From sequence record PP712906.1: a DNA stretch of 64,000 bases. The stretch is one strand, 5' to 3'. This document shows positions 13,272 through 57,394 of this stretch, in pieces (position 1 is the first letter of the stretch; each line of letters opens with the position of its first letter). Position numbers and translations under genes: made by a program. Below the pieces are notes generated by a model that was not told where the DNA came from, did not search any database, and was given only the letters and a program-made list of their open reading frames with translations.

Positions 13272-13279
13272 TATAAATA
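13272..13279 (+). promoter_or_regulatory. T4-type late promoter
   Basis: Exact TATAAATA about 20 bp before the ATG at 13301. Confidence 0.85.
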
Positions 13280-13300: not shown

Positions 13301-14182
13301 ATGATTATATTCGAAGACATTAATCCGCTTTGTGAAGCATTTGACCGCCCAGCACCTTATAAATGGGATTCTATGTACAACGAAGCTCGATTTACGGTTG
13401 GGAACGTGCAGTATGTCGCGTTTATCAAAGATAATGACACAGCAAGAGGTTTAAGTCTGTATGTGGCATTTCAGCGTCGTGATAACGCAACTGGTCAATG
13501 GACTCACTCACTTGCTAAAGGCTCGCCGAAAGACGCAATGACGGTATTGAGCACAATACTGGCAGCAACATTTGACAAGGCATCAAAAGTTGAACCGAAT
13601 GAAATTACATTCAGTGCATTTCGTGACGCAGAGGACGAAGACGCAAATAAGCGTTTTAGACTGTACAAGCGTATGGCTGAGCGATACGCAAAGCAAATGA
13701 ATTACACAGTTCATATCACTGGTAATAGCTTCACACTAACAAACAACAATGCACCTAAGGTTAGACGACTTCACAATGACGGCATTCACAAAGATGATGA
13801 ACTTACATACGTAAATTTCCCTGCTTGTAATGCATTCACATGGGCGAAGCTTTTCTGGCTCGACAATGACGGCGATTACATCAAACTTACATTACCTCAC
13901 GGTCGTATTCACATTGTGAAAAAATCAAGTGACGTGATTGAAATCGAAGCAATCACACCGAAAGGTCGTTTTGACAATCTAGATTCAGATGAGATTTGGA
14001 TGTCGATGTTATCTGATATTAAAGTGAAAGCTAGAGGCGGAAGCACATTTACTATATCAGAGAAAGGCGCGATTTTAGATGCGGGTGATATGATTTTGTG
14101 TGAGCAAGGTACGTTTTATTACCTAAGTTCTGAAGATGATTTCAAAGAAATATGGGGATATGAAATCGTCTCGATTGAATAA
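13301..14182 (+). CDS. candidate internal head protein, paralog family member A
   Basis: Late promoter; LCE|AFDRP leader; core SLAKG..KDAMTV..ITFSAF..D..KRFRLYKRMAER shared with the ORF at 49762. Confidence 0.75.
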   Translation: MIIFEDINPLCEAFDRPAPYKWDSMYNEARFTVGNVQYVAFIKDNDTARGLSLYVAFQRRDNATGQWTHSLAKGSPKDAMTVLSTILAATFDKASKVEPNEITFSAFRDAEDEDANKRFRLYKRMAERYAKQMNYTVHITGNSFTLTNNNAPKVRRLHNDGIHKDDELTYVNFPACNAFTWAKLFWLDNDGDYIKLTLPHGRIHIVKKSSDVIEIEAITPKGRFDNLDSDEIWMSMLSDIKVKARGGSTFTISEKGAILDAGDMILCEQGTFYYLSSEDDFKEIWGYEIVSIE

Positions 14183-14214: not shown

Positions 14215-15879
14215 TCATGGTGTTAGAGGACTACGCTCTTTAACCTTGCGTTCATCGTCGATGTCAATATCAACAACTCGCATGAAGTTAGCGACTTCGG
14301 TTAGCTCATGTAAACGGTCTTGCTTTTTGTAAGCAGACAGAACACCGATTTTCGCTGAATTGTCTTTGACTTTCAATCGAATCACCGCATCGAACTCAGA
14401 CAATTGAACCACGTCGGCTTCGAACATCGTATTACGGTTGATGATGAAATCACAATCGCCTTTCTTCCCGTATTTGCCTGGTGCTAGAACAGGTAACCCG
14501 TCAGACTCAATAACAAACACAACGTTCAGTTTTCTGTCAGATTCGAGCATATCACGCATAATTGATTTGCTATTCTTGCTCGTCGCGTTGACGATTGTTT
14601 TCGCGCTAGATTCAACAAAGTCACATGCAACAAATGGATCAGTTGATGATGTAATGAACGCAGTTGAAACGAACGCACCAGATTCAAGAATCGAGGCGAC
14701 ACGTTTGCTAGACATTTCACAACCACGATATAACGTAACGCCATTCGACACCTTACCAGCTTCATAGAAAGCTCGGTCTAAGCGAGAAATTGCATCCCTA
14801 ACCTTTTCATCACCAGTGCCGTGAACTAACTCTTCATTGACCTTCCACGAATAACGAGACGCAGAATAGCGAGAAATTGCAGCTTGGGTAAGAGAAGATA
14901 GACCAGCATATGAATCTTCTTGCATCATTTGCAACGATAATTGGTCATATTGCTTCTCAAACGCACGTGAGCGGGCTTTTAACAGTGCGGAGCATACTTC
15001 ACTAATCAAATTAGATTTAACGCCCTCTGAACGTGCTGAAGCGATATATGGGTTCATTCGTTCTGCTACATCAACAAGGTCGATGTTCATATCAACAATT
15101 GCTTGAGCAGCGTTAGCCAATTTCGTTAGACCGTCAGTTGCTGCCGCTTCGGTTAATTGCTGCTTGATAGATGCACTGACACGCGCTTCCATTTGTGGCA
15201 TTTGCAGAATTTGATTCGGGACGCGAACGGCAGGGTTTTCTTCTACCCATTGACCTAGAACATCATCTTCATAATCATCATAGCCAACATCGGCAGTCAC
15301 GATGATTGTTTTCTTGCTTGAAATGTCAGTCTCTTTCGCCATTTTAGCAGCAAGAATATTGATTGTTTCTTCGGTTGCTTCGACGAGTTTATCAGCGTCA
15401 TAGCCAGGTTTCGTGATCACGAAGAAGCTGAAATCTTCAGCCATTTCATTATCACCGACGTTCATGATTTTAGTCGTTTCGCAGCCGTATCGAAGTTTCT
15501 TGAACAGCGTTTTAACACGCATGTCGAACATTTTACCGCTACCGATCTTTTGAATACGCATAGACACAGCGTTGGCACGTGTTTTCAACATGAAACTTTG
15601 GATCAATTTAACCAATGTTTCTTGAAACTTTTCTTGGTCTCCCATGTCACGAATGGTTAATCCGCCTTTTTTGCCTCGCATTGCTGAGACAGTACAGAAC
15701 CACGAACGTTTTCCGCGATTTCCGATGTTTGATTTTGTTTTAGTTGTGAACGAAACTACAACGTCACGAGCTTCGCCTTTCATATCGATCACAAAGAATT
15801 TGTTTTCTTTGGTCGAGCGAGCCGGATAGTAGTCGTACGTTGCGCTCATGTTTTCAGTTAATTGTTGAAATCCAATCAT
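14215..15879 (-). CDS. alt: Alt-like ADP-ribosyltransferase
   Basis: C-terminal ART fold: TLYRG, TSST and a catalytic loop reading GDCDFII; MIGFQQLTE leader; late motif CATAAATA at 15912-15919 on the minus strand. Confidence 0.78.
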   Translation of the reverse strand: MIGFQQLTENMSATYDYYPARSTKENKFFVIDMKGEARDVVVSFTTKTKSNIGNRGKRSWFCTVSAMRGKKGGLTIRDMGDQEKFQETLVKLIQSFMLKTRANAVSMRIQKIGSGKMFDMRVKTLFKKLRYGCETTKIMNVGDNEMAEDFSFFVITKPGYDADKLVEATEETINILAAKMAKETDISSKKTIIVTADVGYDDYEDDVLGQWVEENPAVRVPNQILQMPQMEARVSASIKQQLTEAAATDGLTKLANAAQAIVDMNIDLVDVAERMNPYIASARSEGVKSNLISEVCSALLKARSRAFEKQYDQLSLQMMQEDSYAGLSSLTQAAISRYSASRYSWKVNEELVHGTGDEKVRDAISRLDRAFYEAGKVSNGVTLYRGCEMSSKRVASILESGAFVSTAFITSSTDPFVACDFVESSAKTIVNATSKNSKSIMRDMLESDRKLNVVFVIESDGLPVLAPGKYGKKGDCDFIINRNTMFEADVVQLSEFDAVIRLKVKDNSAKIGVLSAYKKQDRLHELTEVANFMRVVDIDIDDERKVKERSPLTP

Positions 15880-17631: not shown

Positions 17632-17871
17632 ATGATAACGATATACACAATTCCTAACTGTGACGGTTGTCGTCACGCTATCGCCCTCTGTAAGTTCAAA
17701 CACGTTCCGTATACTGTAATCGAGTTACAGTCGCAGACTGACATCGACCAATTACATCAAAAGCTTGGTGATAATCGCAACATTCGCGTTCCTCTTGCTA
17801 TGCATGGTGACACATACATCGGTCACCTGCCTGAATTGAAGAAATGGGTTGATGAACAGACGTATAAATAA
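17632..17871 (+). CDS. glutaredoxin-like protein
   Basis: ITIYTIPNCDGC CxxC motif, VP motif, YIG. Confidence 0.9.
   Translation: MITIYTIPNCDGCRHAIALCKFKHVPYTVIELQSQTDIDQLHQKLGDNRNIRVPLAMHGDTYIGHLPELKKWVDEQTYK
17863..17870 (+). promoter_or_regulatory. T4-type late promoter
   Basis: Exact TATAAATA upstream of the capsid-like gene. Confidence 0.85.
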
Positions 17872-17929: not shown

Positions 17930-18826
17930 ATGACTGTATCTAATAGTAACGGTTTACCAGACATTGTTACTGTTCAAAAACGACTATATCCGCTGATCTT
18001 CACGGAAATCGTTTCTGAACAGCCAACAAAGCAACCCGTTGCAACTGCTTACGGATTTAAAGCTGTACCTGAAGCTGATGACGGCAGCGGCTGGACACAA
18101 TTTGGGTTTAGACTTGATCGTTGGTATGCTCAAGTTGAATCTTCAAAAATGAAGACTGAAATCTCTCTTGAAACGCTGCAAGATATGCAAGCACTTGGGG
18201 TTAGCAATTCAGTGATCGTAGACTCACTAGCTGACCAAATTGCTGATGAAATCAATACGTCGATTATCGGTGCGTTAAATAGCATTTCAACTGTTGGTAC
18301 TGCACTAACCCTGACGGGTAATAATGATTTTGAAAAAGGTCAAGATCTTTATACGAAAGTACACCTAGCAGCGGCTGAAATTGAAAAAACAACTGGTTGT
18401 AAAGGCACATATGTCGTTGCGGGCGGTAAATGTTTCGGTTATTTGACTGGTTGTGGTGTTGTACAGCGAGTTGGCGAATCGGACGTTTACAAAGCATGGT
18501 CTGGTTTATACATCGTACACGACAAATACGCAACAAGCGATTACGTGACTGTAGGTGTTAAGAAAGACATGGGTGATTATGAAATCTCAAGTCTAGTATT
18601 CAGCCCGTATCAATTCGACCAAGCGAATGACGGTGCGATTGCTTATCAATACAAGGGCACTGACCCGAAATCATTCCACCCTGTGTATGGTGTTATTGCT
18701 CGTTACGCACTAACTGTTCCGCCACTAGAAGACAATCAGACTGGTGCAGTTGAGATTGATTGGTCGAACTTAGGCGCGCTTGCTAATAGCTCAAAGCTTT
18801 CATACACATACGCAGTAACAGTATAA
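17930..18826 (+). CDS. 24: gp23/gp24-family capsid (vertex-like) protein, short form
   Basis: IVSEQPTKQPVATAYG, TEISLETLQDM, LADQIADEINTSII and VIARYAL motifs typical of gp23/24. Confidence 0.75.
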   Translation: MTVSNSNGLPDIVTVQKRLYPLIFTEIVSEQPTKQPVATAYGFKAVPEADDGSGWTQFGFRLDRWYAQVESSKMKTEISLETLQDMQALGVSNSVIVDSLADQIADEINTSIIGALNSISTVGTALTLTGNNDFEKGQDLYTKVHLAAAEIEKTTGCKGTYVVAGGKCFGYLTGCGVVQRVGESDVYKAWSGLYIVHDKYATSDYVTVGVKKDMGDYEISSLVFSPYQFDQANDGAIAYQYKGTDPKSFHPVYGVIARYALTVPPLEDNQTGAVEIDWSNLGALANSSKLSYTYAVTV

Positions 18827-18834
18827 GGTGTGAC

Positions 18835-19347
18835 ATGAAAAATCATTATGTAGATAATAAAGCTCTATACGCATCACTATGCGAATGGAAAGACGAAATG
18901 AATAAGAATCCTGATGCGACAATCCCAGTACCTGATGTGGTCGCGATTAGCATCATGAAGATTAGCGAGAACCTGTCTCGCCGTTACAACTTTAGTGGTT
19001 ACACTGCTACGTGGAAAGAAGAAATGATTGGTGACGCAATCGAACATTGCTTGCGTTACATCAAAAATTTCGATACTGATAAGTACAATAATCCACACGC
19101 TTACATCACTCGTATCTGTTTCAATGCGTTCGTGCAACGCATTAAGAAAGAAAGAAAAGATACAGCGATTAAATATAAAGTATTCTTATGTGATTCGTCT
19201 AACTACACAGTTGAAGGCGAAGAGACTGATTTCGAGTTTCTTCAGCAAATGTTAGAGCGTGTCAATTCTTACGAGTCTGGCAAAACGGCTAAAGCTCAAC
19301 CAGATGAACAGAAAGAACCACTTAACTTACAGAAATTTTACGATTAA
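18835..19347 (+). CDS. 55: late sigma factor
   Basis: NHYVDNK, YNFSGYT..WKEEMIGDAIE, NPHAYITRICFNAFVQRIKKE. Confidence 0.96.
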   Translation: MKNHYVDNKALYASLCEWKDEMNKNPDATIPVPDVVAISIMKISENLSRRYNFSGYTATWKEEMIGDAIEHCLRYIKNFDTDKYNNPHAYITRICFNAFVQRIKKERKDTAIKYKVFLCDSSNYTVEGEETDFEFLQQMLERVNSYESGKTAKAQPDEQKEPLNLQKFYD

Positions 19348-19356
19348 GGAATTAAC

Positions 19357-20802
19357 ATGTTAGGTAACTTTGACTCATTTCTGAGTGAAAATCGCCGTCA
19401 AACTCAGGGTGGAAAAATCTACCCTAAGTTTGGTCAAGTTATTGTTGAGCTAGGCACTGCATCTACTGAGTTCAGCAAAGCCAAAGGCGTTGAAACAACT
19501 ATCGGCATGATGGAGAAGGCAAATGAGCTTAAATCTATCATGAACACTAAACTGGCTGAAGATAAAAACGTCGATGAGAAACATTTCGACATCAATCTGA
19601 GCGAGAACGTAAGCACGGTTAACCTGCTTATGGAAAACGAATTCTTGGCGCTGCCAGCTCATGAGCTACAGCAAGTCAAATCAATGATCATGTGTACTGA
19701 AGCACGTCTTCCTAGCATCGTGATTAAAGGTGGTTCATTGGATCAAGTTGTTGCTGAAGCAACGAAACTAGGCTACAAGAAAAGTGACATTCACGTTGTT
19801 TTCCCGATGCGTGAAATGAAAATCAATCTTGCTGACTCTGACAAGCTTGTTATTGAATCTCTATCAATTGACGACAATTCAGCGTCTGAGATTCTTTCAA
19901 TGGCTGAAAACATCGAGCTTGGTGACGTTTATGTGACTGTAGAATCGGTTGATTCTAAGGCTGAACTGTCTGAAATCACTGAACTGAAGATTAAATCTGG
20001 TAAAAATGCGCTGACACTAGCTGCACTTAACCGCAAGATCATGGATCAGTTTATCGTGAAAGAAGCGAAAGAAGTTTCATATGCACGTGAGCGCAAAGAA
20101 GACACTGGTCTCCCAATGCTTGAAGGGTTCAAGGCATACGATCTGAAACAGAACATCACCATGATTGAACATGCTCAGAACGCATTCACAAAAGAGATTA
20201 CAGTAGCTCCGCTATCTTCGACTGCGTGGCAAAATCTTGTTGATGTTAAAGAAGCTTACTTCGATAACGGTTGGAAACTGAAGCACAACAATACAAGCAT
20301 CGTTCTAACAAACGCTGAACACGCAATGCGTGCTGGTCGTGTTTGTGAAGAATATCGAGTCGAGCTATCTGAAGCAGGTTATCCTCTTCTTGATATGATC
20401 GCAATGATGGAAAGCAAAGGCATGACTCGCTTTGATTGTAAATCATTTGCTGAAGCAATGATGAAATTCGACGGCTGTGTTACGCCAGAGCGCCAGACTG
20501 TGACTGCATTTGTTACTGAATCTGCTAGTAATCGCGTATTTCACCCGAATATTATGTCAAGCCTACGTCCTGTGACCGAAATGGTTGATGATGTTGACAG
20601 TCTAATTCGTGCGCTTGCTAATGATCAGTTCAGCACGTTCAAAATCGGACAATCATTCTCTGAATCAATGCTTGACCAAGAAACGCTATACTCTATGATG
20701 GAAAGCATTGTTTCTGATGGTGTTGATGTATCAGTGGACGGGACTTTGATTGAATTCAAAGTGAATGCAACCAATTACCTAATCAATATCGACATAAAAT
20801 AA
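19357..20802 (+). CDS. hypothetical protein with capsid-targeting-like leader
   Basis: 481-aa ORF; MLGNFDSFLSE leader; AGGA SD. Confidence 0.8.
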   Translation: MLGNFDSFLSENRRQTQGGKIYPKFGQVIVELGTASTEFSKAKGVETTIGMMEKANELKSIMNTKLAEDKNVDEKHFDINLSENVSTVNLLMENEFLALPAHELQQVKSMIMCTEARLPSIVIKGGSLDQVVAEATKLGYKKSDIHVVFPMREMKINLADSDKLVIESLSIDDNSASEILSMAENIELGDVYVTVESVDSKAELSEITELKIKSGKNALTLAALNRKIMDQFIVKEAKEVSYARERKEDTGLPMLEGFKAYDLKQNITMIEHAQNAFTKEITVAPLSSTAWQNLVDVKEAYFDNGWKLKHNNTSIVLTNAEHAMRAGRVCEEYRVELSEAGYPLLDMIAMMESKGMTRFDCKSFAEAMMKFDGCVTPERQTVTAFVTESASNRVFHPNIMSSLRPVTEMVDDVDSLIRALANDQFSTFKIGQSFSESMLDQETLYSMMESIVSDGVDVSVDGTLIEFKVNATNYLINIDIK

Positions 20803-20810
20803 GGTGAAAC

Positions 20811-21458
20811 ATGAAACAATTTTGTAATTTTTTAGCTGAAGTTCAGAAATACAGTTCAGCGGCTACGTCGATTCGCGGTAAAGAAGTTGCTGCATTGGTT
20901 AAATTGTTCAAGTCAGGCATGTTCGTGCCTGGCGGAACAGCACTTGACTACGGCGCGGGCAAATACGGTCGTAATGCTGAATTTCTTCGCAGTGAAGGCA
21001 TTCGCACTTACGCATACGACAAATTCAATGGGACATCGGCTGATGGTTGGAACGCAGTTAGCTTAACTATCCCGAATGGTGAGACATTCGATACTGGCTT
21101 CACGTCATACGTATTGAACGTTGTTCCTGAAGAAGTCGAAGCAGAAATCATACGTGATGTTGAGTCTCGTACACGCGGTAAAGTGTTCCATATTACACGC
21201 GGTACTGACATCACTCAGACTGTATTCAACGTAATCAGCGGTAAGAGCAAGAATGACGTAATGATGCAATTCATTGCTCAAGAATATCCAGAGATTTACG
21301 GTCAGATTGTCGCGAACGGTGGGACTAAAGAATTGGCTAAAGAGATTGCAACTCGTGGAGTTGTAACAGCTAAAGACAGTTTCCAACGTATTCCAGACCT
21401 ATCGAAATACGGTTACAAGAAATCTGGTTCAGGCGCTTCAGTCGTTTGGACAAAATAA
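20811..21458 (+). CDS. class I SAM-dependent methyltransferase with capsid-targeting-like leader
   Basis: LDYGAGK motif I, AYD motif II, YVLNVV motif IV; MKQFCNFLAE leader. Confidence 0.85.
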   Translation: MKQFCNFLAEVQKYSSAATSIRGKEVAALVKLFKSGMFVPGGTALDYGAGKYGRNAEFLRSEGIRTYAYDKFNGTSADGWNAVSLTIPNGETFDTGFTSYVLNVVPEEVEAEIIRDVESRTRGKVFHITRGTDITQTVFNVISGKSKNDVMMQFIAQEYPEIYGQIVANGGTKELAKEIATRGVVTAKDSFQRIPDLSKYGYKKSGSGASVVWTK

Positions 21459-21475
21459 TTTGAAATTATTTGAAT

Positions 21476-21555
21476 AAAAGGGTTGCTTCGGCAACCCTTT
21501 TTGCGTATTATAGCTACATCGAAACGAGATACGAACACAAAGAGAGAACGTTATG
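21476..21555 (+). promoter_or_regulatory. early promoter cassette within a terminator hairpin
   Basis: TTGCTT 21483-21488, 17 bp spacer, TATTAT 21506-21511, CATCGAAACGA box. Confidence 0.8.
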
Positions 21556-21813
21556 ATGATTACTGAATACCTACGCAATAATACAGTTCGCGAAATGCTA
21601 GATTGCCCTGCTACTTCGCTTGCATTCTGGTCACAAGAATTCATGATCATCCCTGATGAAGACCTAACTTTTGTTGAAAACGATGAAAACGTTCTAATCA
21701 AGATGAACGAAATCGAAGTTGTTGTGCCGTACAATATGACGCTTGAAGTTCTTGAGCAAATGTTCGGTGACGCACTAAGTGAACATGTTAGAAAGATTAA
21801 AGAACGTGTTTAA
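21553..21813 (+). CDS. hypothetical early protein
   Basis: Behind the promoter cassette. Confidence 0.7.
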   Translation: MMITEYLRNNTVREMLDCPATSLAFWSQEFMIIPDEDLTFVENDENVLIKMNEIEVVVPYNMTLEVLEQMFGDALSEHVRKIKERV

Positions 21814-21860
21814 CATCGGTTTATCTCATCCTATAATACTCAAACATTGAAGGAAATATT

Positions 21861-22319
21861 ATGATCTACATTGAAACAAGCAACATCCTTTCTGATGACA
21901 CTCTCGGCTTTGCAATGGCTGGCGCGCCTCAAGTCGATAAACTTGAGAAAAAAGAGCGTGACAATGTGCTTAACAAAGCTGTTGAAGTCAAGCTCTACGA
22001 ACGTCTTCCATCGACTGCTGTACTTGATTTTCTCTTGAATCAAAAAATTCCCTTCATCGCCGTACTGAGCAAAGTAGAAGTTATTGCTGAACAGCAACGT
22101 GCGTGGTTTGATGCAATTGGCAAGCACTTGAATATTGATGTGATGTACACAGATTTTCAAGAAGTCGAGCACAATCTCGATACGCTGTTGATTGCTGAAG
22201 ATCGACATGAACTGAAACGTCACGCTCAAAATAACGGTAGAATTCTACCATTCACAACTGAAACACAATTTCAATTCATTATCGACCATCTATCTTCGGT
22301 CGACAATAAGGAGCAGTAA
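21861..22319 (+). CDS. hypothetical protein
   Basis: GAAGGA SD; after a GTTTAA-N18-TATAAT promoter. Confidence 0.75.
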   Translation: MIYIETSNILSDDTLGFAMAGAPQVDKLEKKERDNVLNKAVEVKLYERLPSTAVLDFLLNQKIPFIAVLSKVEVIAEQQRAWFDAIGKHLNIDVMYTDFQEVEHNLDTLLIAEDRHELKRHAQNNGRILPFTTETQFQFIIDHLSSVDNKEQ

Positions 22320-22669
22320 TGCAAGAGAAGCCAGATTTACTCAAAGACGACGAAATTGTTGATGTAGTTGAAGATCAAGAAGTTCTTGACTATCTTGATG
22401 AACTACAAGCTCAACGTCGTGCGCTTGTCGAGAAAGAAGCACATCGTCGTATCAAGAAAAACTCGCGTGAGATTAAACGTCTGCATAAACACGCTGAAAA
22501 GTGTCTAATCGAAGGTAACAAAGCGGGTTACGTCTACGCAATCGGCAAACTTCGTTCTATTACTGGTCAGACAGTTGGTGACGATGTACTTGAAACGTTA
22601 TGGAAAACTAGTCGTGAGCAAGTACTAACAATCGCACGTTCATTTGCAGAAGCGAAAGCAGGTCAATAA
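22319..22669 (+). CDS. conserved T4-like protein (a-gt.4-like)
   Basis: IKKNSREIKRLHKHAE...YAIGKLR resembles a-gt.4 as recalled; location upstream of gene 47. Confidence 0.6.
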   Translation: MQEKPDLLKDDEIVDVVEDQEVLDYLDELQAQRRALVEKEAHRRIKKNSREIKRLHKHAEKCLIEGNKAGYVYAIGKLRSITGQTVGDDVLETLWKTSREQVLTIARSFAEAKAGQ

Positions 22670-40031: not shown

Positions 40032-40422
40032 TTTTGATATTGCACTACTTAATCCGACTATCATCAAGTCAACTGAAATCGCAGGTCATAACTTCGGTAA
40101 CAAAGTTATCGAGATTGTGAGTGATCACATTGACGGCGATGACATGGATAACTTCATTGAATTCATCGTTGAAGCTGAAGCACGAGAGCGTGAGCACCCG
40201 TATGTAGGTCATTTCTACGGTGATTTGTTAGTCATGAGCTTGTCTGAAGACCGTCATCACTTCGAAGCACGTATGTCTGACGAAGACATTGCGAATCTGA
40301 CAATCACGATTGATGATGCATTCATTCAATACACAAATGAGTTTATTGAATGGTACAAGCAGAAAGCGCGAGAGTTCTTCGATGATGATGAATTGGAATT
40401 CATCATTGAAAACGAAATCTAA
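40024..40422 (+). CDS. hypothetical acidic protein
   Basis: GAGG SD; followed by a terminator. Confidence 0.7.
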   Translation: MTDFDIALLNPTIIKSTEIAGHNFGNKVIEIVSDHIDGDDMDNFIEFIVEAEAREREHPYVGHFYGDLLVMSLSEDRHHFEARMSDEDIANLTITIDDAFIQYTNEFIEWYKQKAREFFDDDELEFIIENEI

Positions 40423-40494: not shown

Positions 40495-41949
40495 ATGAAA
40501 CTGTTTACTGAATTTTATCAAGAAGTTCGACTTGACGAAATCTCAGATCGTGCGAATATCGACATTGATTGGGATTGGGGTCATGAGAACGGTACGGGAG
40601 AAACTTCGGCGAGATTTGACGCAGCCGGTGAGAAATTCCAAGTTAGCGTTGACGAGAGCAACCCGGGTTATTTCACAATCACATTCCAGAACTCTAGTGG
40701 TTATTCTCAGACTGGTAGAGCGGGACACTCTGCGGCTGCTGTATTCTCTGGCGTATTGACGACTTTACGTGAATTCACCGAAACGTACGAAGAAGAAATG
40801 GGCATGAAACCATATGAATATGACTTCAGCGCAGCGTACGAACTACCGAGAAATCACGACTATTACTCGTTGGTTCACAATCGTCGCGAGGCAACTCGTT
40901 TAGATGAAGAAAGCAAGAAAAAGCTATTGAAAGACTTGATTTCTCGCCCTATGCTTTACTACGCACTATCGTTGACGTTTGGTAAAGAATACGGCTATTC
41001 AACTGAAATTAGCGACCGTTGGCTTGCTCGTCTTGCAGGGGGCGCGAATGATTTCCGTTCCGTTCGTAAGAACGTGACTCGAAGCATTCTGTCGATGAAT
41101 GACAACGACGTTAACCAAGCGTTGATGAACATGAGCGGTTCTGTTTCGTTCACTCTTACCAACGAAAACGAACGTCCTAGCAGCTACGACACAGCATTCG
41201 GTGGCGGTCCGTCTCTTGAAGACTACGTTGATGAAGCAGACCAGTACCAAATCGAAGCGTGGATCAATGATGGTCGTGAAGATGAAATCATCGAACATGC
41301 TGATTGGCAAACTCTAGTTCGCATTGCGGAATGGGGTCTGATGCACGATGAACTGATTTTCCATGATGATGAAGACGTTCGAAACGCGGTAATCCGCACA
41401 GACTACGAAATGGGCGAGAAACTAGCCGAATCGCCTGAGTGGGAACATCGTAAACAAGCTGCTGAAAATGGTTTTGGCATTTGGGATCTTGTTCTTGACT
41501 CTGACGAAGACGTGCGCGAAGCTGCATGGGACTGGTCGTTTGAAAATGACGATGCTGATACTCGAATCACATACGCGAAACGCTACGAAGGCAACTTCGG
41601 TCGCGCAATGGCTGAAGACGTGTGGGATCGCATGATCGACGATTCAGATGACTATGAAGAGCGTCAATACGTAGCTGAACAAGGTTATCGTCTTGAAGAA
41701 CTTCTAGCAGACCATGACGAAGACGTGCGTTCTTCTGCAATCAATGCTGTATTCACGGTAATGGGTCTGGATGGTCGAGAAGCGGCTGAGTTCTTGATGG
41801 AAAACTCTGAACCTTACCAAGAAGAAGTGTTTGAATACGCGATTAACGGTAACTTCGGTCCATCTTTCGATGAAGCACTAATCGAAATTGCTGAAGAAAA
41901 CGGCGTTGATGTTTCTGAGTACAAAGAAGACGAAGACGAAGACGAATAA
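40495..41949 (+). CDS. very acidic HEAT/LRV-repeat protein with capsid-targeting-like leader (paralog family member B)
   Basis: MKLFTEFYQEVRLDE leader; CTAAATA at 40461-40467; three units ending DEDVR. Confidence 0.82.
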   Translation: MKLFTEFYQEVRLDEISDRANIDIDWDWGHENGTGETSARFDAAGEKFQVSVDESNPGYFTITFQNSSGYSQTGRAGHSAAAVFSGVLTTLREFTETYEEEMGMKPYEYDFSAAYELPRNHDYYSLVHNRREATRLDEESKKKLLKDLISRPMLYYALSLTFGKEYGYSTEISDRWLARLAGGANDFRSVRKNVTRSILSMNDNDVNQALMNMSGSVSFTLTNENERPSSYDTAFGGGPSLEDYVDEADQYQIEAWINDGREDEIIEHADWQTLVRIAEWGLMHDELIFHDDEDVRNAVIRTDYEMGEKLAESPEWEHRKQAAENGFGIWDLVLDSDEDVREAAWDWSFENDDADTRITYAKRYEGNFGRAMAEDVWDRMIDDSDDYEERQYVAEQGYRLEELLADHDEDVRSSAINAVFTVMGLDGREAAEFLMENSEPYQEEVFEYAINGNFGPSFDEALIEIAEENGVDVSEYKEDEDEDE

Positions 41950-44254: not shown

Positions 44255-44278
44255 AAAGAGGGGCATTCGCCCCTTTTT
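44253..44278. terminator. bidirectional terminator
   Basis: AAAAAGAGGGGC-ATTC-GCCCCTTTTT between convergent genes. Confidence 0.8.
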
Positions 44279-45332
44279 ATGGTCTGTAGATCATGTGATT
44301 TGAACCCATTCGTTCCCATGTACCTAGATTCATGCGATTTTTCATTTCAGCGAAGAATGCTGGGTTTGCTCTAATGTCATCAAGTGGCAGTGCAACAACA
44401 CCTTCAGTTTTATGCGCCAATAGCTCTAGTTTATCAAGCAAATCAGACGTTGTACGACCGTCATATTTGAATTGACTGAACCAATAACCAATCTTACTGA
44501 ATTTCGTATCTCTTGTGTATTTCACATCAAAGCCTTTCAGAGCATACGCTAAGTTACTTTCTTTACCGTGAAACGGCTTGCGATATGCGCTATGTTCAGC
44601 ACCAGCACGAGCAAGCAATCTCTTCTTAGCTGCGTCTGGTAGATTGAACCACCCATCAAAGTTTTTCTTGAAGTTCAACATCCATGCTTCTGGCGTAGCC
44701 GGTGAGCCTTTGAAGTATGCTTTCGTATCAGCAATGGCTTGTGCATAGCGTGCGTTAATCTCATGAGAATAGTTCTGATATTCGTCGTGAGACGCTTCGT
44801 GACCGCTTTTAGCGTGACGGATGAACTCTTTATCAATGTATCCGCGTTTACGCCCTGAGTGTTGATACACGCCCTCTGCGTCGCTTGTCTCGAAGTCTTC
44901 AATGTCACCAGAACGATAGTTGTCGTAAGCGTGTTGCAGTTCATGTAATGCCGTGCTATACAACTGTGGCTTCTGCAATCTGAATTTCGCCATGATTTGA
45001 CTAACTGCTGTTACTCCAGTTATATCCACGACAAGCTTGAGATACCCTGCTTCTGTGATCGAGTCGTCATGTAATTTGCCATTCCAAACACCGAGTTCGG
45101 TTGGGTTATTATTGTCTAACTTCAGATATGCTAGAATACCTTCAGCTAGTAATGCATCGAACTCACTCTCACCAGTTCTGATATTCAGAGTTTTTGTGTT
45201 GACGGATAGTTTATTTGGATCCCATGGTGCTTTACTTAGAGCGCCTTCTAACTGGCGTTCCAATGTATCGACGATGGTTTTTGACGCTTGTTCTAATGCG
45301 CGTTGTGATTGTACGTTTTCAAAAATAATCAT
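44277..45332 (-). CDS. HExxH zinc metallopeptidase-like protein with a late promoter
   Basis: TALHELQHAYD; MIIFENVQSQRALE leader; CTAAATA on the minus strand at 45365-45371. Confidence 0.78.
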   Translation of the reverse strand: MIIFENVQSQRALEQASKTIVDTLERQLEGALSKAPWDPNKLSVNTKTLNIRTGESEFDALLAEGILAYLKLDNNNPTELGVWNGKLHDDSITEAGYLKLVVDITGVTAVSQIMAKFRLQKPQLYSTALHELQHAYDNYRSGDIEDFETSDAEGVYQHSGRKRGYIDKEFIRHAKSGHEASHDEYQNYSHEINARYAQAIADTKAYFKGSPATPEAWMLNFKKNFDGWFNLPDAAKKRLLARAGAEHSAYRKPFHGKESNLAYALKGFDVKYTRDTKFSKIGYWFSQFKYDGRTTSDLLDKLELLAHKTEGVVALPLDDIRANPAFFAEMKNRMNLGTWERMGSNHMIYRP

Positions 45333-48548: not shown

Positions 48549-48842
48549 ATGAGAGAAGCAATTGCATTATTAAGCAACACGAGAATGGGATATACTGACA
48601 TTAGCGCATTTGGCGATCCAGTATTATATGTTCATGCGGGACATGAGACGGTATTAAAAGTGCAATACACTGAAGATTGCTACTCATTTTACGACTACAG
48701 AAGCAAGTATCTTTATACAGAGCAGTCCATCGACGACTTAGAGATACATTTGAAATCAATAGATGTCGGGCTAGACGATGATCTACCGTTAAATGGTAAC
48801 ATCGACAAAGACACAATACCAGACGGGGAATTTTTAGAATGA
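48549..48842 (+). CDS. hypothetical protein
   Basis: ORF leading into the paralog pair. Confidence 0.6.
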   Translation: MREAIALLSNTRMGYTDISAFGDPVLYVHAGHETVLKVQYTEDCYSFYDYRSKYLYTEQSIDDLEIHLKSIDVGLDDDLPLNGNIDKDTIPDGEFLE

Positions 48843-49759
48843 AGTTTAGTGAATATCAAAGAATAAACGAATCTCTAGATCGCCCTGGCAATTATAAACT
48901 GGTTAGAGAACTCCCGAACTTAAACGTGTATGCGTTTCAAGTTGATGGTGTTTATTATGAAATAGACATTCAGAAATCAAACATACGAGAGCCTAATGGG
49001 ATGCAGTCAATGAAAGCTGAAGTCTCATTCAAAGCACTCGACGGTAGTGGTTATCAACTAACCAAAAAAGACGATAAAACGGCACGAATTGTACTATCAA
49101 CCGTAGTTGATGCTATCTTCAGCTTCGTACGCGAATACAATCCCGCTCAAATATTATATTCCGCATTCAACGATGCTGATCCGTCAGATGCTGCTAAACG
49201 ACTTCGTTTATATCAGATCATGACTAAAGCAAAACTGCGTGAATTCCCCGAATATGATTTCCGAAACGTTGGGCGAGATTTCATCGTCTACGATGTCAAT
49301 TACCAACAACGAGTCGAGGAATTTTCAAGAAGAGCACGTCGACCAGTGGGGTATGAAGAAAGATCAGACCACGTTGAAGTGAATTTATCACACGCCAACG
49401 CTTTTGCGTTTATACGGGCGTTTGGGGTAAATGATGGCGACTCAAAGAGCGGCGTACTAGGTAAAGGTCGAGCTTTCGTAGGCGCAACAAACGAAATTAA
49501 AGCACGTCTAAGAGTAGATCGTGTGGTGTATGAAATGTCTGATAGAGAAGGATGGCTTGCGGCTCTTCAGCACCCTATTTTTGACTATGGCGAGGGTCCT
49601 GAAGTTGATCGAACATATCTAGTCGGGGCATTTAAAAACTTCTATATCGTGTTGACTAGTCAAACAAGTCTAAAAATATACACCGATGATGCTGCGTTTA
49701 CAAAATATGTGAATGCTTTCGACGCGCCATGGTTAAACCCAGAAATAATGGAATCTTAA
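48839..49759 (+). CDS. candidate internal head protein, paralog family member C
   Basis: MKFSEYQRINE|SLDRP leader; ILYSAFNDADPSDAAKRLRLY core. Confidence 0.78.
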   Translation: MKFSEYQRINESLDRPGNYKLVRELPNLNVYAFQVDGVYYEIDIQKSNIREPNGMQSMKAEVSFKALDGSGYQLTKKDDKTARIVLSTVVDAIFSFVREYNPAQILYSAFNDADPSDAAKRLRLYQIMTKAKLREFPEYDFRNVGRDFIVYDVNYQQRVEEFSRRARRPVGYEERSDHVEVNLSHANAFAFIRAFGVNDGDSKSGVLGKGRAFVGATNEIKARLRVDRVVYEMSDREGWLAALQHPIFDYGEGPEVDRTYLVGAFKNFYIVLTSQTSLKIYTDDAAFTKYVNAFDAPWLNPEIMES

Positions 49760-49761
49760 AA

Positions 49762-50613
49762 ATGAAATTTAGCGAATATCAAAACGAGCTAACGGAAGCA
49801 TTTGATCGACCTGCACAGATCACAGCACGTCGTGGCAATCAGAGTTTTTTCATGATTGGTGACACTGAGTACATGGTCGGGTTGTATTACGACGACTCGA
49901 AAAAATCACTCGGAGTTGACTTCATGCATAAACCGGGCGATTCAGCAACGTACTACTACAGCTTAGCCAAAGGCAACTCAAAAGACGCAATGACTGTTTT
50001 TGCCACAGTGATTGCAGAAATCAAGCGGCTTATGAAAGACAACCCGGTAAATAAAATCAGCTTTAGCGCGTTTCAAGACTCTGATAGCTCAGATGCTAAA
50101 AAGCGTTTCCGTTTGTACAAGCGTATGGCAGAACGTTTCAGCAAAGAGCTTGGGTTCAGAATGACCACGTATGGCGATTCTTTCACCATGACACGTATAA
50201 ATCCTGTTGCAGTCAATGTAGAAGAGCCAACTGGTTATGATACAGCGTGGGGTACTGAAATGCTCGATCTGTATGAAGTCAACGACGCTGCAATTGCCAA
50301 AGTCACAGAAGGTGATGGTGAATGGCGTTTGAATAACTGGAACAAGCTGATTGTTCGCAACGGTAAAGTAACACTAACATCGGGTCCAATTCGAATGTCA
50401 GACGCTTGGTACGATGCGTTTTACGACTTAGAATGGTATCACGATGAAGAAGGCGAACAATGGTTCGATGATGAACAGAAGATCGCGATCATCAATGGTA
50501 AAGTTTGGGTCATCCACGACATGGAAATTACTATTTGGCCAAGTATTGAGAAATTAGAATTGCAAAGTGACTCGGAATTATCAAGCGGGACACGTCAATT
50601 GCTCGGATATTAA
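49762..50613 (+). CDS. candidate internal head protein, paralog family member D
   Basis: MKFSEYQNELTE|AFDRP leader; core closely matches the ORF at 13301. Confidence 0.78.
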   Translation: MKFSEYQNELTEAFDRPAQITARRGNQSFFMIGDTEYMVGLYYDDSKKSLGVDFMHKPGDSATYYYSLAKGNSKDAMTVFATVIAEIKRLMKDNPVNKISFSAFQDSDSSDAKKRFRLYKRMAERFSKELGFRMTTYGDSFTMTRINPVAVNVEEPTGYDTAWGTEMLDLYEVNDAAIAKVTEGDGEWRLNNWNKLIVRNGKVTLTSGPIRMSDAWYDAFYDLEWYHDEEGEQWFDDEQKIAIINGKVWVIHDMEITIWPSIEKLELQSDSELSSGTRQLLGY

Positions 50614-52898: not shown

Positions 52899-53573
52899 AT
52901 GTTAGACAAAAATAAAGTAGATCCAGTACTTGGACAAAAAGTTGAAGCGCATCTTCGTAAAATCGGGATGCACACGCCGACTGTTGAAAACGGTCTAACT
53001 GATGATGAAAAGAAAGCTATTCTTGAAGATCGTTTCACTGACATCATGCAAGCTCTTGGTCTTGACTTATCAGACGATTCATTAGTTGATACTCCGAAGC
53101 GTTGGGCTAAGATGATGGTTAACGAGCTTATGAGCGGTCTGTCGCCAGATATGTTCCCGAAATGTACGGCTGTAGACAACAAAATGAACTACGATCAGAT
53201 GGTTTGTGAAAAAGGTATTACTGTTCTTTCACAATGTGAACATCACATCGTAACAATCGACGGCTTTGCCACAGTTGCATACATCCCGAAGAAAAAAGTT
53301 CTTGGTCTGTCAAAAATGAATCGCATCGTTGAGTACTTCGCTCGACGCCCGCAGATTCAAGAGCGTCTGACTGTTCAAATCGCTGAAGCACTGAAATTCA
53401 TTCTTGAAACTGACGACGTAGCGGTGATGTTAGACTGCAAACACTATTGCGTCAAAGCACGCGGTGTTGAAGATAACAATTCAAGTACTGTTACAAGTCA
53501 TCTTTCAGGTGCATTTAGAAATGAACCAGAAGCACGAGCGGAATTTATGTCTCTTGCTCGTTCACAGGCGTAA
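52899..53573 (+). CDS. folE: GTP cyclohydrolase I
   Basis: DTPKRWAKM, SQCEHH, GLSKMNRIV..FARRPQIQERLT, HYCVKARGV. Confidence 0.97.
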   Translation: MLDKNKVDPVLGQKVEAHLRKIGMHTPTVENGLTDDEKKAILEDRFTDIMQALGLDLSDDSLVDTPKRWAKMMVNELMSGLSPDMFPKCTAVDNKMNYDQMVCEKGITVLSQCEHHIVTIDGFATVAYIPKKKVLGLSKMNRIVEYFARRPQIQERLTVQIAEALKFILETDDVAVMLDCKHYCVKARGVEDNNSSTVTSHLSGAFRNEPEARAEFMSLARSQA

Positions 53574-54246
53574 CGTACCAATCTTTGAACTTAGCCGATG
53601 TGTATTTTACGCATCGGTTATACACAGTCACATTAGTGGTATCATTAGCTTCGGCTGCTAATCGAGACGACTCAAACACCCCGTTTGGTGTGTGGAATAG
53701 ATACTTCGATTGTGGGTTTTGACTCCCGACTTTAGACTTAGCGAGCTTTCGCTTATGTTCTTCAGTTTTTGTCGTGCCCTTCAGAACACCTTTACTCTTC
53801 GCAACATATTCACCGCGAAGGTATCGTTCGTCGTCAACTCGAATGTATTCAGTTTCACCAGTAGCAATGCATATCGCAGCAAACTTACCTATATGATGCT
53901 TTGCAGCATCTTTTCTGGCATCTTTTGTCATCGACTCAAACAACCTAGAGTTCATCTTGAACTCGCGTTGCTGTGAGTTGTTCGACATATTAAATGCTGT
54001 TAGTGCAAACTTCAGCCGATGTTTCAAGTTACCATTGAACATCTTAGCCAATAGCAAATGAGCTATATAATGCTCACGTGCTGTCAATCGCACTAGGTTA
54101 TTTGATTCATCACTACCACCCGCACATTTAGGTAAAATGTGATGTTTTTCGCTATAACCGTCTGGTGTGTTTTGAATTCGATTCTCGATTAGAGAAATGT
54201 ACCATTTTGTGTATTTGTTTAGTATAAGATTGTCGTGTGTTAACAT
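53545..54246 (-). mobile_element. free-standing HNH homing endonuclease (Mob-like)
   Basis: EKHHILPKCAGGSDESNNLVRLTAREHYIAH; NUMOD3-like segment; TATAAATA on the minus strand at 54280-54287. Confidence 0.9.
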
Positions 54247-54307
54247 TGTACTCTCTTTAAATAAGCATTACTGTGTTAATATTTATAATTTTAAGACGAG
54301 GTTCACA

Positions 54308-55684
54308 TTGATCATTGAATACGTTATGTCTGCGACGGGTCATGCCCGTCTCGGTGCAGCACATAAGCTAATGGACGTAGTTGACACGTCCTATTTGCGC
54401 GATATTCTAAATGCAGCGCAAGATCTCGACGGTGTTCACAAAATCAGTATGCTGTACAACGCATATACTGAAAAGAAAGTCGGTCATCAAATCAATGACT
54501 TGTTTGGCGATTCTGTCTACAAGGTACACGTCGATTCGGGTGGTCTACAGATAGTCAACTTGGGTTTAGAGAATACGCCAGAACTTCGTAAAGCAGTTTA
54601 CGAGAATCAAGCAGAATCTGGCGATATTGGCATGTGTTTTGACGAAATCCCGTTGCACAACGAAGCAAAGGGTGGTGGCGCTGCTCGTATCAACACGAAA
54701 GACAAGGTCTTCATGTATGATCTAGCGTACAAGTACGGCGTCAAAACAGGTAAGAACATTCGCGCACAAATCGAAACTTATATCGAGAAGGGTAGCAAAT
54801 GCAAACCGTATATCATCTTACAAGGCAACTCAGACGACGACTTTAAAGCATTCAGTGACGGGATTATGTCTCAACTCGAAGGCGTTGAAGATCACATTGC
54901 TGGTTGTGCTGCTGCCGATACATGCATTGGTAATGGCGTGCGTGAGTCTATCGACATGATGAGCGTCATTCCGAAACTCAACATCCCAGAGAAAGCAAAG
55001 AAATCAGTGCATATGCTGGGAGTTGGCTCAGTTAAACGTCTATTGCCTGCTGTAGCACTTATCAGAAGTGGTTATTTTGGCGATGACTTTCATATCAGCT
55101 ATGACTCATCAACGCATACTGGATGTCTGACTAACCGAGAATACACTGATAAGCTTGGTCGTCGTCGTAAGATCTCGGGTCACGGCATCATGAAAGATGG
55201 TAAGAAATTGCCTTCTCGTGAGCTTGATGAAATGCTAGATGAAGTGTGGGGTCGATTCGGTCATGCTCTACCGCGTAGCAAAGAAGAGTTCAAGGAATTC
55301 GCGACACGTCTGTGGTTGAAAGAACTCGACAAAGAAACAATGACTGACGAAGATATTGTGTTTGAAGTTGCTTGCAACTTGTGTATAATCTTATCACAAG
55401 TCAACAACTTTCAAGCGATTATCTCTGAAACGTTTGACTTGAATACGCCAAAAGCTGCTGATTTGTCAGCGTTCTTCGGTGGTTCTATTGAGAAAAAAGA
55501 GCCGCAAGAGGGATTCAAGAAGTGGTCAGCGATTCGTCGTCTTGATGTTCTTGATAAACTACTTGACGTTAAAACTATCGAAGCATATGATCGCTGGCAC
55601 AGTAGCTATGTTGATAGACTACCGTCAATGCGCATTCGTCGCGGCACAACTGCTGAATTCCCAGCTTTCAAAGAACAAGAATAG
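54308..55684 (+). CDS. dpdA: DpdA/TGT-like 7-deazaguanine DNA transglycosylase
   Basis: HVDSGGLQ, MCFDEIP, ILQGN, HMLGVG, SYDSST; TTG start after GAGG; deazaguanine-cluster context. Confidence 0.82.
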   Translation: MIIEYVMSATGHARLGAAHKLMDVVDTSYLRDILNAAQDLDGVHKISMLYNAYTEKKVGHQINDLFGDSVYKVHVDSGGLQIVNLGLENTPELRKAVYENQAESGDIGMCFDEIPLHNEAKGGGAARINTKDKVFMYDLAYKYGVKTGKNIRAQIETYIEKGSKCKPYIILQGNSDDDFKAFSDGIMSQLEGVEDHIAGCAAADTCIGNGVRESIDMMSVIPKLNIPEKAKKSVHMLGVGSVKRLLPAVALIRSGYFGDDFHISYDSSTHTGCLTNREYTDKLGRRRKISGHGIMKDGKKLPSRELDEMLDEVWGRFGHALPRSKEEFKEFATRLWLKELDKETMTDEDIVFEVACNLCIILSQVNNFQAIISETFDLNTPKAADLSAFFGGSIEKKEPQEGFKKWSAIRRLDVLDKLLDVKTIEAYDRWHSSYVDRLPSMRIRRGTTAEFPAFKEQE

Positions 55685-55702
55685 CGCCTTCGGGCGCTCT
55701 TT
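55683..55702 (+). terminator. hairpin / weak terminator
   Basis: AGCGCC-TTCG-GGCGCT CTTT. Confidence 0.6.
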
Positions 55703-55713
55703 ATGAGGTAAAC

Positions 55714-56622
55714 ATGAGCAATTATGATCAAGTTTCAGCTATTGCTGCTGAACATTTAGGTAAAAAAGCTGGCGATTACAGCGATTTCGTTGACATCGTA
55801 GAAGTTCGCCCTGATTTACTCGTGCCAATCCCGCGTGAACTGAATCGAACTGACTACGGTATCACAAATGAAGACTTTGCAGGGTTTGATACGTGGCATG
55901 GCTTCGAAGTTTCTGCACTGACTGAACAAGGTCTGCCTGTATCAGGCATGGCTAAAGTAGTGTATCCGAGTGATTCACCGAACATCGTTGAAAGTAAATC
56001 AATGAAACTGTACTGGAACAGCTTCAACATGGCTAAAGTCGCTGCGACCCGTGCTGAAGTGAAAGGTGCAATTGAAGCAATCGCGTCGCGTGATCTATCT
56101 GAAGTCATCGGTGCGCCTGTTCAAGTGAGTTTCTTCACTGAAAAGCTAACCCAACCTCATGGTATGACTGGCTTTGCTGAACTCGACAAATATGTTTCTG
56201 AATCGACCGTGTTTGACTCTGAGAGTGGTGCTGACACCGAGCTATTGCAAGAGTCGCACATCAAGAAACTGAAAGTGTTCACGCCTAATCTGCGTTCAAA
56301 CTGTCGCGTTACACATCAACCCGACTTCGGTGATTTGTACGTATACATGAGCGGCGAAAAGACTCCGACTGTTGATAGTCTGATGCAATACATCGTTTCT
56401 TTCCGCAAAGAGAATCATTTCCATGAAGAATGCGTTGAAATGATTTACAAAGCGTTGCTTGACAAGTTCGACCCGACTGAACTGATGGTCACAGCGTTAT
56501 ACACACGTCGCGGTGGATGGAATATCTGTCCAGCACGAGCGACACACGAAGAGCTATTGCCAGAAGCACTTGGTAGTAAATCTGTCTCGCACACTAACGG
56601 AAGTTGTTTATTCCGTCAGTAA
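55714..56622 (+). CDS. queF: NADPH-dependent preQ0 reductase (bimodular QueF)
   Basis: QueF motif ESKSMKLY, catalytic SNCRVT..QPDFG, FHEECVE, YTRRGG. Confidence 0.94.
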   Translation: MSNYDQVSAIAAEHLGKKAGDYSDFVDIVEVRPDLLVPIPRELNRTDYGITNEDFAGFDTWHGFEVSALTEQGLPVSGMAKVVYPSDSPNIVESKSMKLYWNSFNMAKVAATRAEVKGAIEAIASRDLSEVIGAPVQVSFFTEKLTQPHGMTGFAELDKYVSESTVFDSESGADTELLQESHIKKLKVFTPNLRSNCRVTHQPDFGDLYVYMSGEKTPTVDSLMQYIVSFRKENHFHEECVEMIYKALLDKFDPTELMVTALYTRRGGWNICPARATHEELLPEALGSKSVSHTNGSCLFRQ

Positions 56623-56677
56623 TAAGAGCTATGATGAGTGTTCAATTGTGAGCACTCATATACTTGAGAGGTTAAAA

Positions 56678-57394
56678 ATGAAAGTAGTATCTGTTCTAAG
56701 CGGTGGCTTGGACTCAACAATCCTTACGTACAAACTAGTTGACGAATTCGGCAAAGACAATGTGTTTGCATTATCGTTCTACTACGGTCAAAAACAGTCG
56801 ATTGAGCTAGAAAAAGCTAAATTGACTTGTCAAAAGCTCGGCATCGAGCATCGTCTAATTGACATTTCATTCTTAGGTGAAGTCGTCGCGCCAGTCTGTG
56901 CGAATATCGCTGGTTCAGATGTTGCTATGCCAACTATTCAAGATGTTCTCGGTGACCCTCAGCCACCAACTGAAGTTCCATATCGTAACATGCTATTGAA
57001 CACAATCGCGTTCTCATTCGCGCAAGCAAATGATTGTTCAGCGGTGTTTACTGGCATTCAAGTGCATGACGCATATGGTTATTGGGACTGCACGCAAGAT
57101 TTTCTTGACGGCATGAACAAAATTTCAGCACTGAATCGTCAGCACGAAATTTTGTTACTTGCGCCATTCGCTCAAATGTCAAAAGCAGATGAAATAGAAA
57201 TCGGCGTTCAGCTTGGTGTGCCGTTCGAGGATAGTCTGACTTGTTACGACCCGAACGAAGCTGGCGAAAGCTGTGGTAAATGTCCGTCTTGTGCTGAACG
57301 CATCATGAACTTCGGCAAAGCTGGTATCGTCGATCCTGCGCCTTACTCAATTGACATCCCGTGGGAGCAAGTATTTGCTAAGGCAGGTCATTAA
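56678..57394 (+). CDS. queC: 7-cyano-7-deazaguanine synthase
   Basis: SGGLDS, YGQK, VPYRN, YWDC, C..CGKCPSC zinc site. Confidence 0.96.
   Translation: MKVVSVLSGGLDSTILTYKLVDEFGKDNVFALSFYYGQKQSIELEKAKLTCQKLGIEHRLIDISFLGEVVAPVCANIAGSDVAMPTIQDVLGDPQPPTEVPYRNMLLNTIAFSFAQANDCSAVFTGIQVHDAYGYWDCTQDFLDGMNKISALNRQHEILLLAPFAQMSKADEIEIGVQLGVPFEDSLTCYDPNEAGESCGKCPSCAERIMNFGKAGIVDPAPYSIDIPWEQVFAKAGH

Follow-up and report, generated by a model that had tools for sequence, protein, structure and literature searches.

A putative head-packaged methyltransferase with a T4-type capsid-targeting leader in KVP40-like vibriophages

In T4-family phages, a short signal at the N-terminus is known to direct proteins, in sets that vary, into the head; the cargoes characterised so far are the Alt ADP-ribosyltransferase and small proteins that counter restriction. 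An open reading frame of 215 codons in a vibriophage genome (20811-21458, plus strand), whose product begins MKQFCNFLAEVQKYSS, raises the question of whether an enzyme of another kind could travel by the same route. An original prediction, made from the letters alone, had read the first ten residues as a T4-like capsid-targeting sequence, the remainder as a class I methyltransferase, and the product as a possibly injected methylase acting on the incoming genome or on a host component. We examined the gene and its neighbourhood, the fold and family of its product, the leader, and the evidence for the protein in phage particles. We favour, and hold to be reasonably probable, the explanation that the product is a small SAM-dependent methyltransferase of class I, which takes its place among the internal proteins of the phage head and is delivered to the host.

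The gene and its transcription unit

The stretch analysed, which we call the window, comprises 64,000 nucleotides and, by megablast coordinates, forms the final 64 kb of record PP712906.1. Its positions 19300-22400 matched Vibrio phage TCU-VP03-AIR1 (PP712906.1) with 100% identity, phi-pp2 with 99.9% and KVP40 with 98.8%. TCU-VP03-AIR1 and its relatives are Schizotequatroviruses, jumbo myoviruses of the T4 family. The reading frame is the counterpart of KVP40.0066, which is annotated as hypothetical, and it matches phrog_14016 over its full length. A Shine-Dalgarno-like AAGGTG lies 4 nt 5' of its ATG, and it is a genuine gene. A comparison of 18 Schizotequatrovirus genomes found it to be core in all of them, with a dN/dS of 0.018 (PMC12028318).

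The gene is the last of four on the plus strand that are spaced 8-9 nt apart. The first encodes a gp24-like capsid vertex protein (17930..18826), whose ortholog was detected in virions of phage 6E35.1a with 90 and 145 spectral counts. It is followed by the gene for the late sigma factor gp55 (18835..19347; phrog_234, E 1.6e-58) and by a KVP40.0065-like gene of 481 codons (19357..20802; phrog_14490), which ends 8 nt before the methyltransferase start. An intrinsic terminator on the same strand (21476..21506), with an 11-bp stem, a UUCG loop and a subsequent U-run (-17.7 kcal/mol, z -4.0), closes the unit, and no terminator-like site was found on the plus strand between 17500 and 21458. A T4-type late promoter box, TATAAATA, occupies 17863..17870 on the plus strand, some 60 nt ahead of the gp24-like gene. 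Exact copies of this box occur four times in the 64 kb against 1.76 expected, a count that is not significant, and as late-promoter evidence for the unit the box is suggestive only; the copy at 17863 is apt because it is placed ahead of the capsid vertex gene. On this evidence, the methyltransferase gene would be transcribed late, together with the gp24-like, gp55 and KVP40.0065-like genes.

A second exact box lies at 13272-13279 (plus strand), 22 nt before the ortholog of KVP40.0058, itself a virion protein. Both plus-strand boxes are located just 5' of genes that have virion proteins as orthologs, within a genome region that is otherwise early or middle.

The surroundings of more distant family members were examined on IMG/VR contigs. 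There, the genes adjoined homologs of gp20-gp21-gp23 (contigs L018, L023 and L024), gp18 or gp4 (L020, L026 and L027), or gp43 and gp41 (L016, L017 and L019). These neighbourhoods indicate that the family belongs to T4-superfamily phages, often within the structural module.

Fold, family and relation to known methyltransferases

The DYGAG, AYD and YVLNVV motifs named in the original prediction are all present in the 215-aa protein, as LDYGAGKYG (residues 45-53), YAYD (67-70) and YVLNVVPE (100-107). As a single query, the window protein matched no Pfam or NCBIfam methyltransferase HMM, and a single-sequence search against PDB sequences returned nothing meaningful; a profile search against the PDB gave only marginal motif-I matches to TehB and NS5. 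The family as a whole was more informative. A word-indexed search recovered 232 homologs, and an exhaustive profile search recovered 133 clusters at E<=1e-30 and 1522 at E<=1e-3. In an alignment of 99 sequences, 14 positions were invariant (T19, D46, G48, G50, R54, D70, F93, N103, V104, H127, R130, G183, Q192 and R193), and these include the SAM-binding signature, namely the motif I residues D46, G48 and G50 and the acidic D70 at the end of strand beta-2. PF13489 (Methyltransf_23) was matched by 89 of the 99 aligned homologs, with a best E of 8.8e-9.

The structural evidence agreed with this assignment. An AlphaFold model built with the family alignment (pLDDT 90.6, pTM 0.85) displayed a seven-stranded alpha/beta fold, with low confidence confined to residues 1-20 (pLDDT 46-52). 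Foldseek searches of the PDB and Swiss-Prot, re-aligned with VIA, returned class I SAM methyltransferases exclusively as top matches, with Z of 12-14; among them were Rv0560c, TehB, ChlM, UbiG/UbiE and METTL6. We consider the class I methyltransferase fold and the SAM-binding motifs, as originally proposed, to be well supported, with SAM binding and catalysis themselves predicted from them.

With enzymes of the Methyltransf_23, Methyltransf_11 and TehB types, the protein shares the Rossmann-like fold, the motif I pattern DxGxGxxG and the acidic residue after strand beta-2, and its VLNVVP segment can be aligned by eye with the 'vlehvpd' segment of these families. It differs from them in its invariant T19, S20, I21, R54, H127, R130, Q192 and R193 and in a four-helix insert between beta-5 and beta-6. 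These relatives give no guide to the substrate of the window enzyme. Some family members are fused to other domains: an N-terminal DUF5661, a GNAT acetyltransferase, or a 1110-aa DUF5710 protein of which the family domain forms the N-terminus (P0122, P0126, P0123 and P0143). When examined for the substrate, neither these fusions nor look-alikes from the Atlas (fusions with ParB_N or Exo_endo_phos, and Bmt2) offered a firm clue.

The original prediction had also likened the motif set to putative methyltransferases found near DNA phosphorothioation loci. This likeness holds, as a distant one. TIGR04096 (DNA phosphorothioation-associated putative methyltransferase) was the NCBIfam model that matched most members, 69 of 99 with a best E of 6.6e-8, at scores of 13-27 bits against a cut-off of 150 and over only positions 6-83 of the 478 in the profile. 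The match takes in the segment that precedes motif I and extends through strand beta-2. In addition, two AFDB clusters named TIGR04096 aligned with residues 19-215 at a TM of 0.53-0.55, among the best structural matches. The window family is accordingly a distant relative of TIGR04096 and not a member. TIGR04096 proteins are cellular and about 480-580 aa long, whereas the window protein is a phage protein of 215 aa, and its gene neighbours are gp24-like, gp55 and gp47 genes, not dnd/dpt phosphorothioation genes. PADLOC gave no matches for the window protein, its upstream neighbour or four homologs. A literature search for functional studies of TIGR04096 found none, one genome description left aside.

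An assignment to the Dam/Dcm-type DNA methyltransferases was rejected. The family alignment contains no D/N/S-P-P-Y/F/W motif IV and no conserved PC motif, and the motif IV region of the window protein reads LNVVPE, which we judged to be of the Methyltransf_11/23 type. With neither a D/N-P-P-Y/F nor a PC motif in the family, the enzyme probably works by a chemistry other than that of Dam or Dcm. The separate small DNA methyltransferase cited in the original prediction is indeed encoded in the window (62902-63480, plus strand; 192 aa) and carries TNPPF. Its gene lies about 800 bp beyond the otherwise constant offset to KVP40, which points to an insertion nearby relative to that genome.

The leader and the evidence for the protein in virions

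The putative capsid-targeting sequence, MKQFCNFLAE, occupies codons 1-10 (20811..20840, plus strand), within the stretch of low pLDDT. In T4, the capsid-targeting sequence consists of the ten N-terminal residues (PMC8442874), of which residues 4 and 7 mainly serve targeting and residues 8 and 10 processing (PMC9026906). Translation of the T4 record gave MKTYQEFIAE for both IPII and IPIII, and MKTFKEFTST for IPI. The window leader is identical to the first of these at five of ten positions, with Y/F and I/L substitutions besides, and it matches at all four functionally mapped positions (F4, F7, L8 and E10 against Y4, F7, I8 and E10). We expressed the published mapping as a rule: an aromatic residue at 4 and 7, I or L at 8, and E at 10. 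In the KVP40 genome, 2 of 2192 Met-starts satisfied it, KVP40.0066 and an internal Met of KVP40.0096, against a chance expectation of about 0.04 per proteome; KVP40.0066 is the sole annotated start among them. The proposed T4-type leader is supported both by its match at the four mapped positions and by its near-uniqueness in the KVP40 genome.

The internal Met of the KVP40.0096-like reading frame (40144-40422, plus strand) begins MDNFIEFIVE, an exact fit to the rule. With a start there, the product would have 92 aa, a length comparable to that of a T4 internal protein, and its gene would immediately precede the virion protein gene at 40495; the annotated start of this reading frame may be wrong.

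Conservation of the leader was examined across the family. Schizotequatrovirus orthologs keep positions 4, 7, 8 and 10 and vary at 3, 5, 6 and 9 (MKQFGEFLTE, MKLFKTFLNE, MKTLKTFLAE and MKSLTDYLEE), and nearly T4-like leaders recur in distant members (MKSFSEFITE, MKTFKNLLAE and MKQFSEFLSE). Overall, the leader is retained by most homologs: a hydrophobic-x-E with the E at positions 8-10 was present in 72 of 113 family proteins, compared with 19 of 285 KVP40 control ORFs. About one third of homologs have no clear L-x-E at 8-10, including some that adjoin gp21 (L023). The looser criterion of an L-x-E near the N-terminus does not discriminate, being found in 6.7% of control ORFs and also in thymidylate synthase. 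In some homologs (P0011, P0012 and P0014), a linker of 20-30 residues, variable in length, separates the leader from the conserved core, an arrangement more in keeping with a modular signal than with a structural element.

The machinery on which such a signal would act is present in this phage group. According to the KVP40 annotation, gp20, gp67, gp68, gp21, gp22 and gp23 are all encoded, by genes outside the 64-kb window, and KVP40 gp21 (MELQLLIE) and gp22 (MQIKEQLLE) start with LIE and LLE sites like T4's own. MKQFCNFLAE may thus act as the T4 IPIII signal does, with F4 and F7 docking to the scaffolding core and L8 and E10 forming the site of the gp21 prohead protease. Predicted cleavage after E10 would remove the leader and leave a basic 22-kDa enzyme in the DNA-filled head; the predicted mature domain, with the stop codon, spans 20841..21458 (plus strand; 205 aa, 22.4 kDa, pI 9.1).

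Evidence for packaging comes from a 2025 Schizotequatrovirus study that applied MS/MS to PEG-precipitated particles of phage 6E35.1a (PMC12028318). A 24-kDa protein, VP6E351A_0103, was recorded there with 31 and 79 spectral counts (Table S4) and is listed as phrog_14016 and QZI87378.1 (Table S8); the text of that study makes no comment on it. By PHROG number, GenBank identifier and tblastn match, with 81% identity, it is the ortholog of the window ORF. The expectation that the protein should be found in virions was thus confirmed for a close ortholog. By our own arithmetic, VP6E351A_0103 reached about 2.3 counts per kDa, on a par with proteins of the tail tube and baseplate and with the Alt-like protein, in a proteome that is from another phage, PEG-precipitated rather than CsCl-banded, and that also contains some clearly non-structural proteins at lower counts. 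A literature search found no further virion proteome for the Schizotequatrovirus group. The new N-terminal tryptic peptide expected after cleavage is VQK, too short for detection.

Other proteins of the same particles were compared by their leaders. We paired the virion-detected non-tail proteins of 6E35.1a that are labelled 'hypothetical' with KVP40 genes by PHROG number, and five others, the Alt-like ADP-ribosyltransferase included, have similar leaders. With a slash at the predicted cleavage, these are MIIFEDINPLCE/AFDRPA in KVP40 0058 (phrog_6387; 16 and 61 counts), MIGFQQLTE/N in the Alt-like KVP40 0059 (122 and 233), MKLFTEFYQE/V in KVP40 0097 (phrog_13195; 58 and 109), MIIFENVQSQRALE/Q in KVP40 0103 (phrog_15811; 18 and 25) and MKFSEYQ..E/ in KVP40 0115/0116 (phrog_6387; 37 and 51).

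In the window, six genes, paired by PHROG family, have such virion-detected counterparts in 6E35.1a: 13301-14182 (+), 14215-15879 (-), 40495-41949 (+), 44277-45332 (-), 48839-49759 (+) and 49762-50613 (+). Phrog_6387 is represented by three window paralogs against two detected proteins, and the three have a common E/AFDRPA junction. The leaders of the six follow the pattern M-[K/I]-x-F-x-[E/N]...hydrophobic-x-E, and together the six genes look like a KVP40-type set of internal or ejected proteins. On a 132-kb TARA contig that carries a family member (L009:13897-18694), nearby ORFs start MRDLINLINE, MRKLRDLIALIE (a NUDIX protein), MRALEFIIE and MGLNKLFKELE; this group may represent capsid-targeted proteins encoded side by side, as at the T4 internal-protein locus.

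A leader of this kind does not by itself establish packaging. The KVP40.0065-like protein starts MLGNFDSFLSE, of the F-L-x-E type, but its ortholog, flagged 'Defense?' in Table S8 of PMC12028318, is absent from the 6E35.1a virion proteome, so the leader alone is insufficient evidence of packaging. For this protein, either such a leader may not be enough to bring about packaging, or packaging may be followed by breakdown inside the head, as happens to scaffold proteins.

The explanation that competes best with packaging, which we nevertheless regard as unlikely, is that the protein is an ordinary cytoplasmic phage methyltransferase, its N-terminal amphipathic helix being part of the fold and its detection in particles reflecting carry-over of an abundant late protein. 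In favour of carry-over, the particles were only PEG-precipitated and also contained the non-structural proteins gp32, dUTPase, NadV and FolE. Yet dUTPase, helicase, NadV and FolE, as evident contaminants, reached only 0.3-0.5 counts per kDa, about fivefold below VP6E351A_0103 with its baseplate- and tail-like level (dUTPase had 7 and 10 counts and thymidylate synthase, another likely contaminant, 1 and 3), and the products of the two co-transcribed upstream genes, the gp55 and KVP40.0065 orthologs, were not detected in the particles at all (PMC12028318 Table S4). As to the helix, many class I methyltransferases have an N-terminal helix that caps the SAM site, and the family-wide conservation of hydrophobic-x-E is as expected of a structural element; against this stand the leader's pLDDT of about 50, the variable-length linkers described above, and the occurrence of the same leader type in other virion-detected proteins.

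Delivery, target and meaning

Given a close ortholog in virions, and by analogy with known head-carried proteins, the enzyme probably enters the host together with the DNA. In full, the packaging and delivery explanation holds that the enzyme, packaged in particles at a tail- or baseplate-like level as seen for the 81%-identical ortholog, would be ejected with the DNA as are the T4 internal proteins, T4 Alt and P1 DarB, and that in the host it would use host SAM to methylate its target within the first minutes of infection.

Each of these precedents resembles the window protein in part. With T4 IPII and IPIII, it shares a decapeptide that fits the four-position rule, an origin in a T4-family phage group that encodes gp21, gp22, gp67 and gp68, a basic mature protein and occurrence in virions (here of an ortholog). 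IPII and IPIII, however, are small proteins with no known enzymatic activity, whereas the window cargo is predicted to be a folded enzyme of 205 aa; the mature parts have no sequence similarity, and for the window protein cleavage and ejection are predictions. T4 Alt is a head-carried enzyme that has a short N-terminal propeptide and acts on host targets at the start of infection, features that are predicted for the window protein. The Alt propeptide has 7 residues (PMC9026906), and the Alt-like protein of these vibriophages is likewise in virions, with an L-T-E leader. Alt performs ADP-ribosylation, in contrast to the methyl transfer from SAM predicted here. P1 DarB contains a methyltransferase domain and so provides a known precedent for an injected methylase. 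It resides inside the head, has an N-terminal packaging signal, confers protection from type I restriction and is believed to pass into the cell (PMC9024508). In contrast to the window protein, DarB is a multidomain protein of 250 kDa from a different phage lineage, with a signal of more than 9 residues that is unrelated in sequence, and no homology between the two proteins was detected.

A quite improbable alternative is that the enzyme modifies the phage's own DNA during replication, at dPreQ1 or another base, and is found in heads merely through DNA binding. The window does contain the deazaguanine cluster cited in the original prediction, at about 52899-58002 (plus strand), with folE, a 460-aa gene at the expected DpdA position, a QueF-like gene, queC and a GATase-like gene, and DNA of 6E35.1a carries 15% dPreQ1 (PMC12028318). 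The protein is also basic, with a pI of 9.1 after cleavage against a family median of 8.3 and a median of 5.8 for KVP40 ORFs, and it has the distant kinship to the phosphorothioation-associated family. On the other hand, the preQ1 methyltransferase of sister phages VH7D, phi-Grn1 and phi-ST2, which produces mdPreQ1, is the unrelated DpdM, a DUF3109 metalloprotein validated in E. coli (PMC10516641). DpdM (VH7D, phiSM) belongs to the same phage group, and its methylation function is tied to DNA modification, but its DUF3109 fold, with two cysteine-rich metal sites, differs from that of the window protein. A crude scan, which is weak evidence, found no DpdM-like cysteine motif in KVP40, unlike in VH7D, phi-Grn1 and phi-ST2. 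Moreover, phage nt-1 retains the window gene at 92% identity even though its DpdA2 inserted no preQ1 in the assay of PMC10516641. The gene lies 31 kb from the cluster, its product lacks the D/N-P-P-Y/F and PC motifs, and modification of the phage's own DNA would leave the leader unexplained. Action on preQ1 in DNA, which had been raised as a second possibility, is accordingly disfavoured, and as a main reading a preQ1-DNA methylase was rejected on the DpdM and nt-1 evidence.

We give equally little credence to a protein that is packaged without being an injected enzyme, either a DNA-condensing or structural internal protein, as the basic, DNA-associated and mostly non-enzymatic T4 internal proteins might suggest, or a small-molecule enzyme like TehB, which is among the best structural neighbours together with other small-molecule methyltransferases: sequences with only 35-40% identity still agree without exception in the SAM-binding motifs and at about 14 other residues, and this, with the dN/dS of 0.018, argues for a conserved catalytic function.

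For the packaged and delivered methyltransferase, our best guess at the target, made by analogy, is a host macromolecule or the incoming DNA, with a role in takeover or anti-defence. A more specific version, and a long shot in our estimation, is that the ejected enzyme is a new anti-defence effector that draws on host SAM and whose target is not a DNA base. This target could be a defence-signalling nucleotide or, in DNA, a phosphorothioate or a position of the backbone; methylation at such a site in DNA would leave Dnd/Ssp-type systems blind. Dnd/Ssp-type systems are common in Vibrio. The hints for an anti-defence effector, and the only ones, are the distant kinship to Dnd-associated proteins, the invariant Arg/His/Gln cluster and the basic charge.

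As far as the proposal could be tested, the evidence supports the view that the known T4-type system of capsid targeting here carries a new kind of enzyme, drawn from an uncharacterised methyltransferase family. If this is true, a conserved SAM-dependent methyltransferase adds a new activity to what T4-family phages deliver at infection. The enzyme is core in all Schizotequatroviruses compared, is under strong purifying selection and belongs to a family with over 130 sequence clusters among uncultured T4-like phages, and packaging gives this uncharacterised family a testable role. The comparison also yields a working leader signature for KVP40-type internal proteins, common to six virion proteins, which could be put to use in predicting the ejected effectors of other marine phages or in bringing cargo into vibriophage capsids. 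Should the anti-defence role prove true, the whole family in marine T4-like phages would represent a conserved 'first-minute' methylation weapon.
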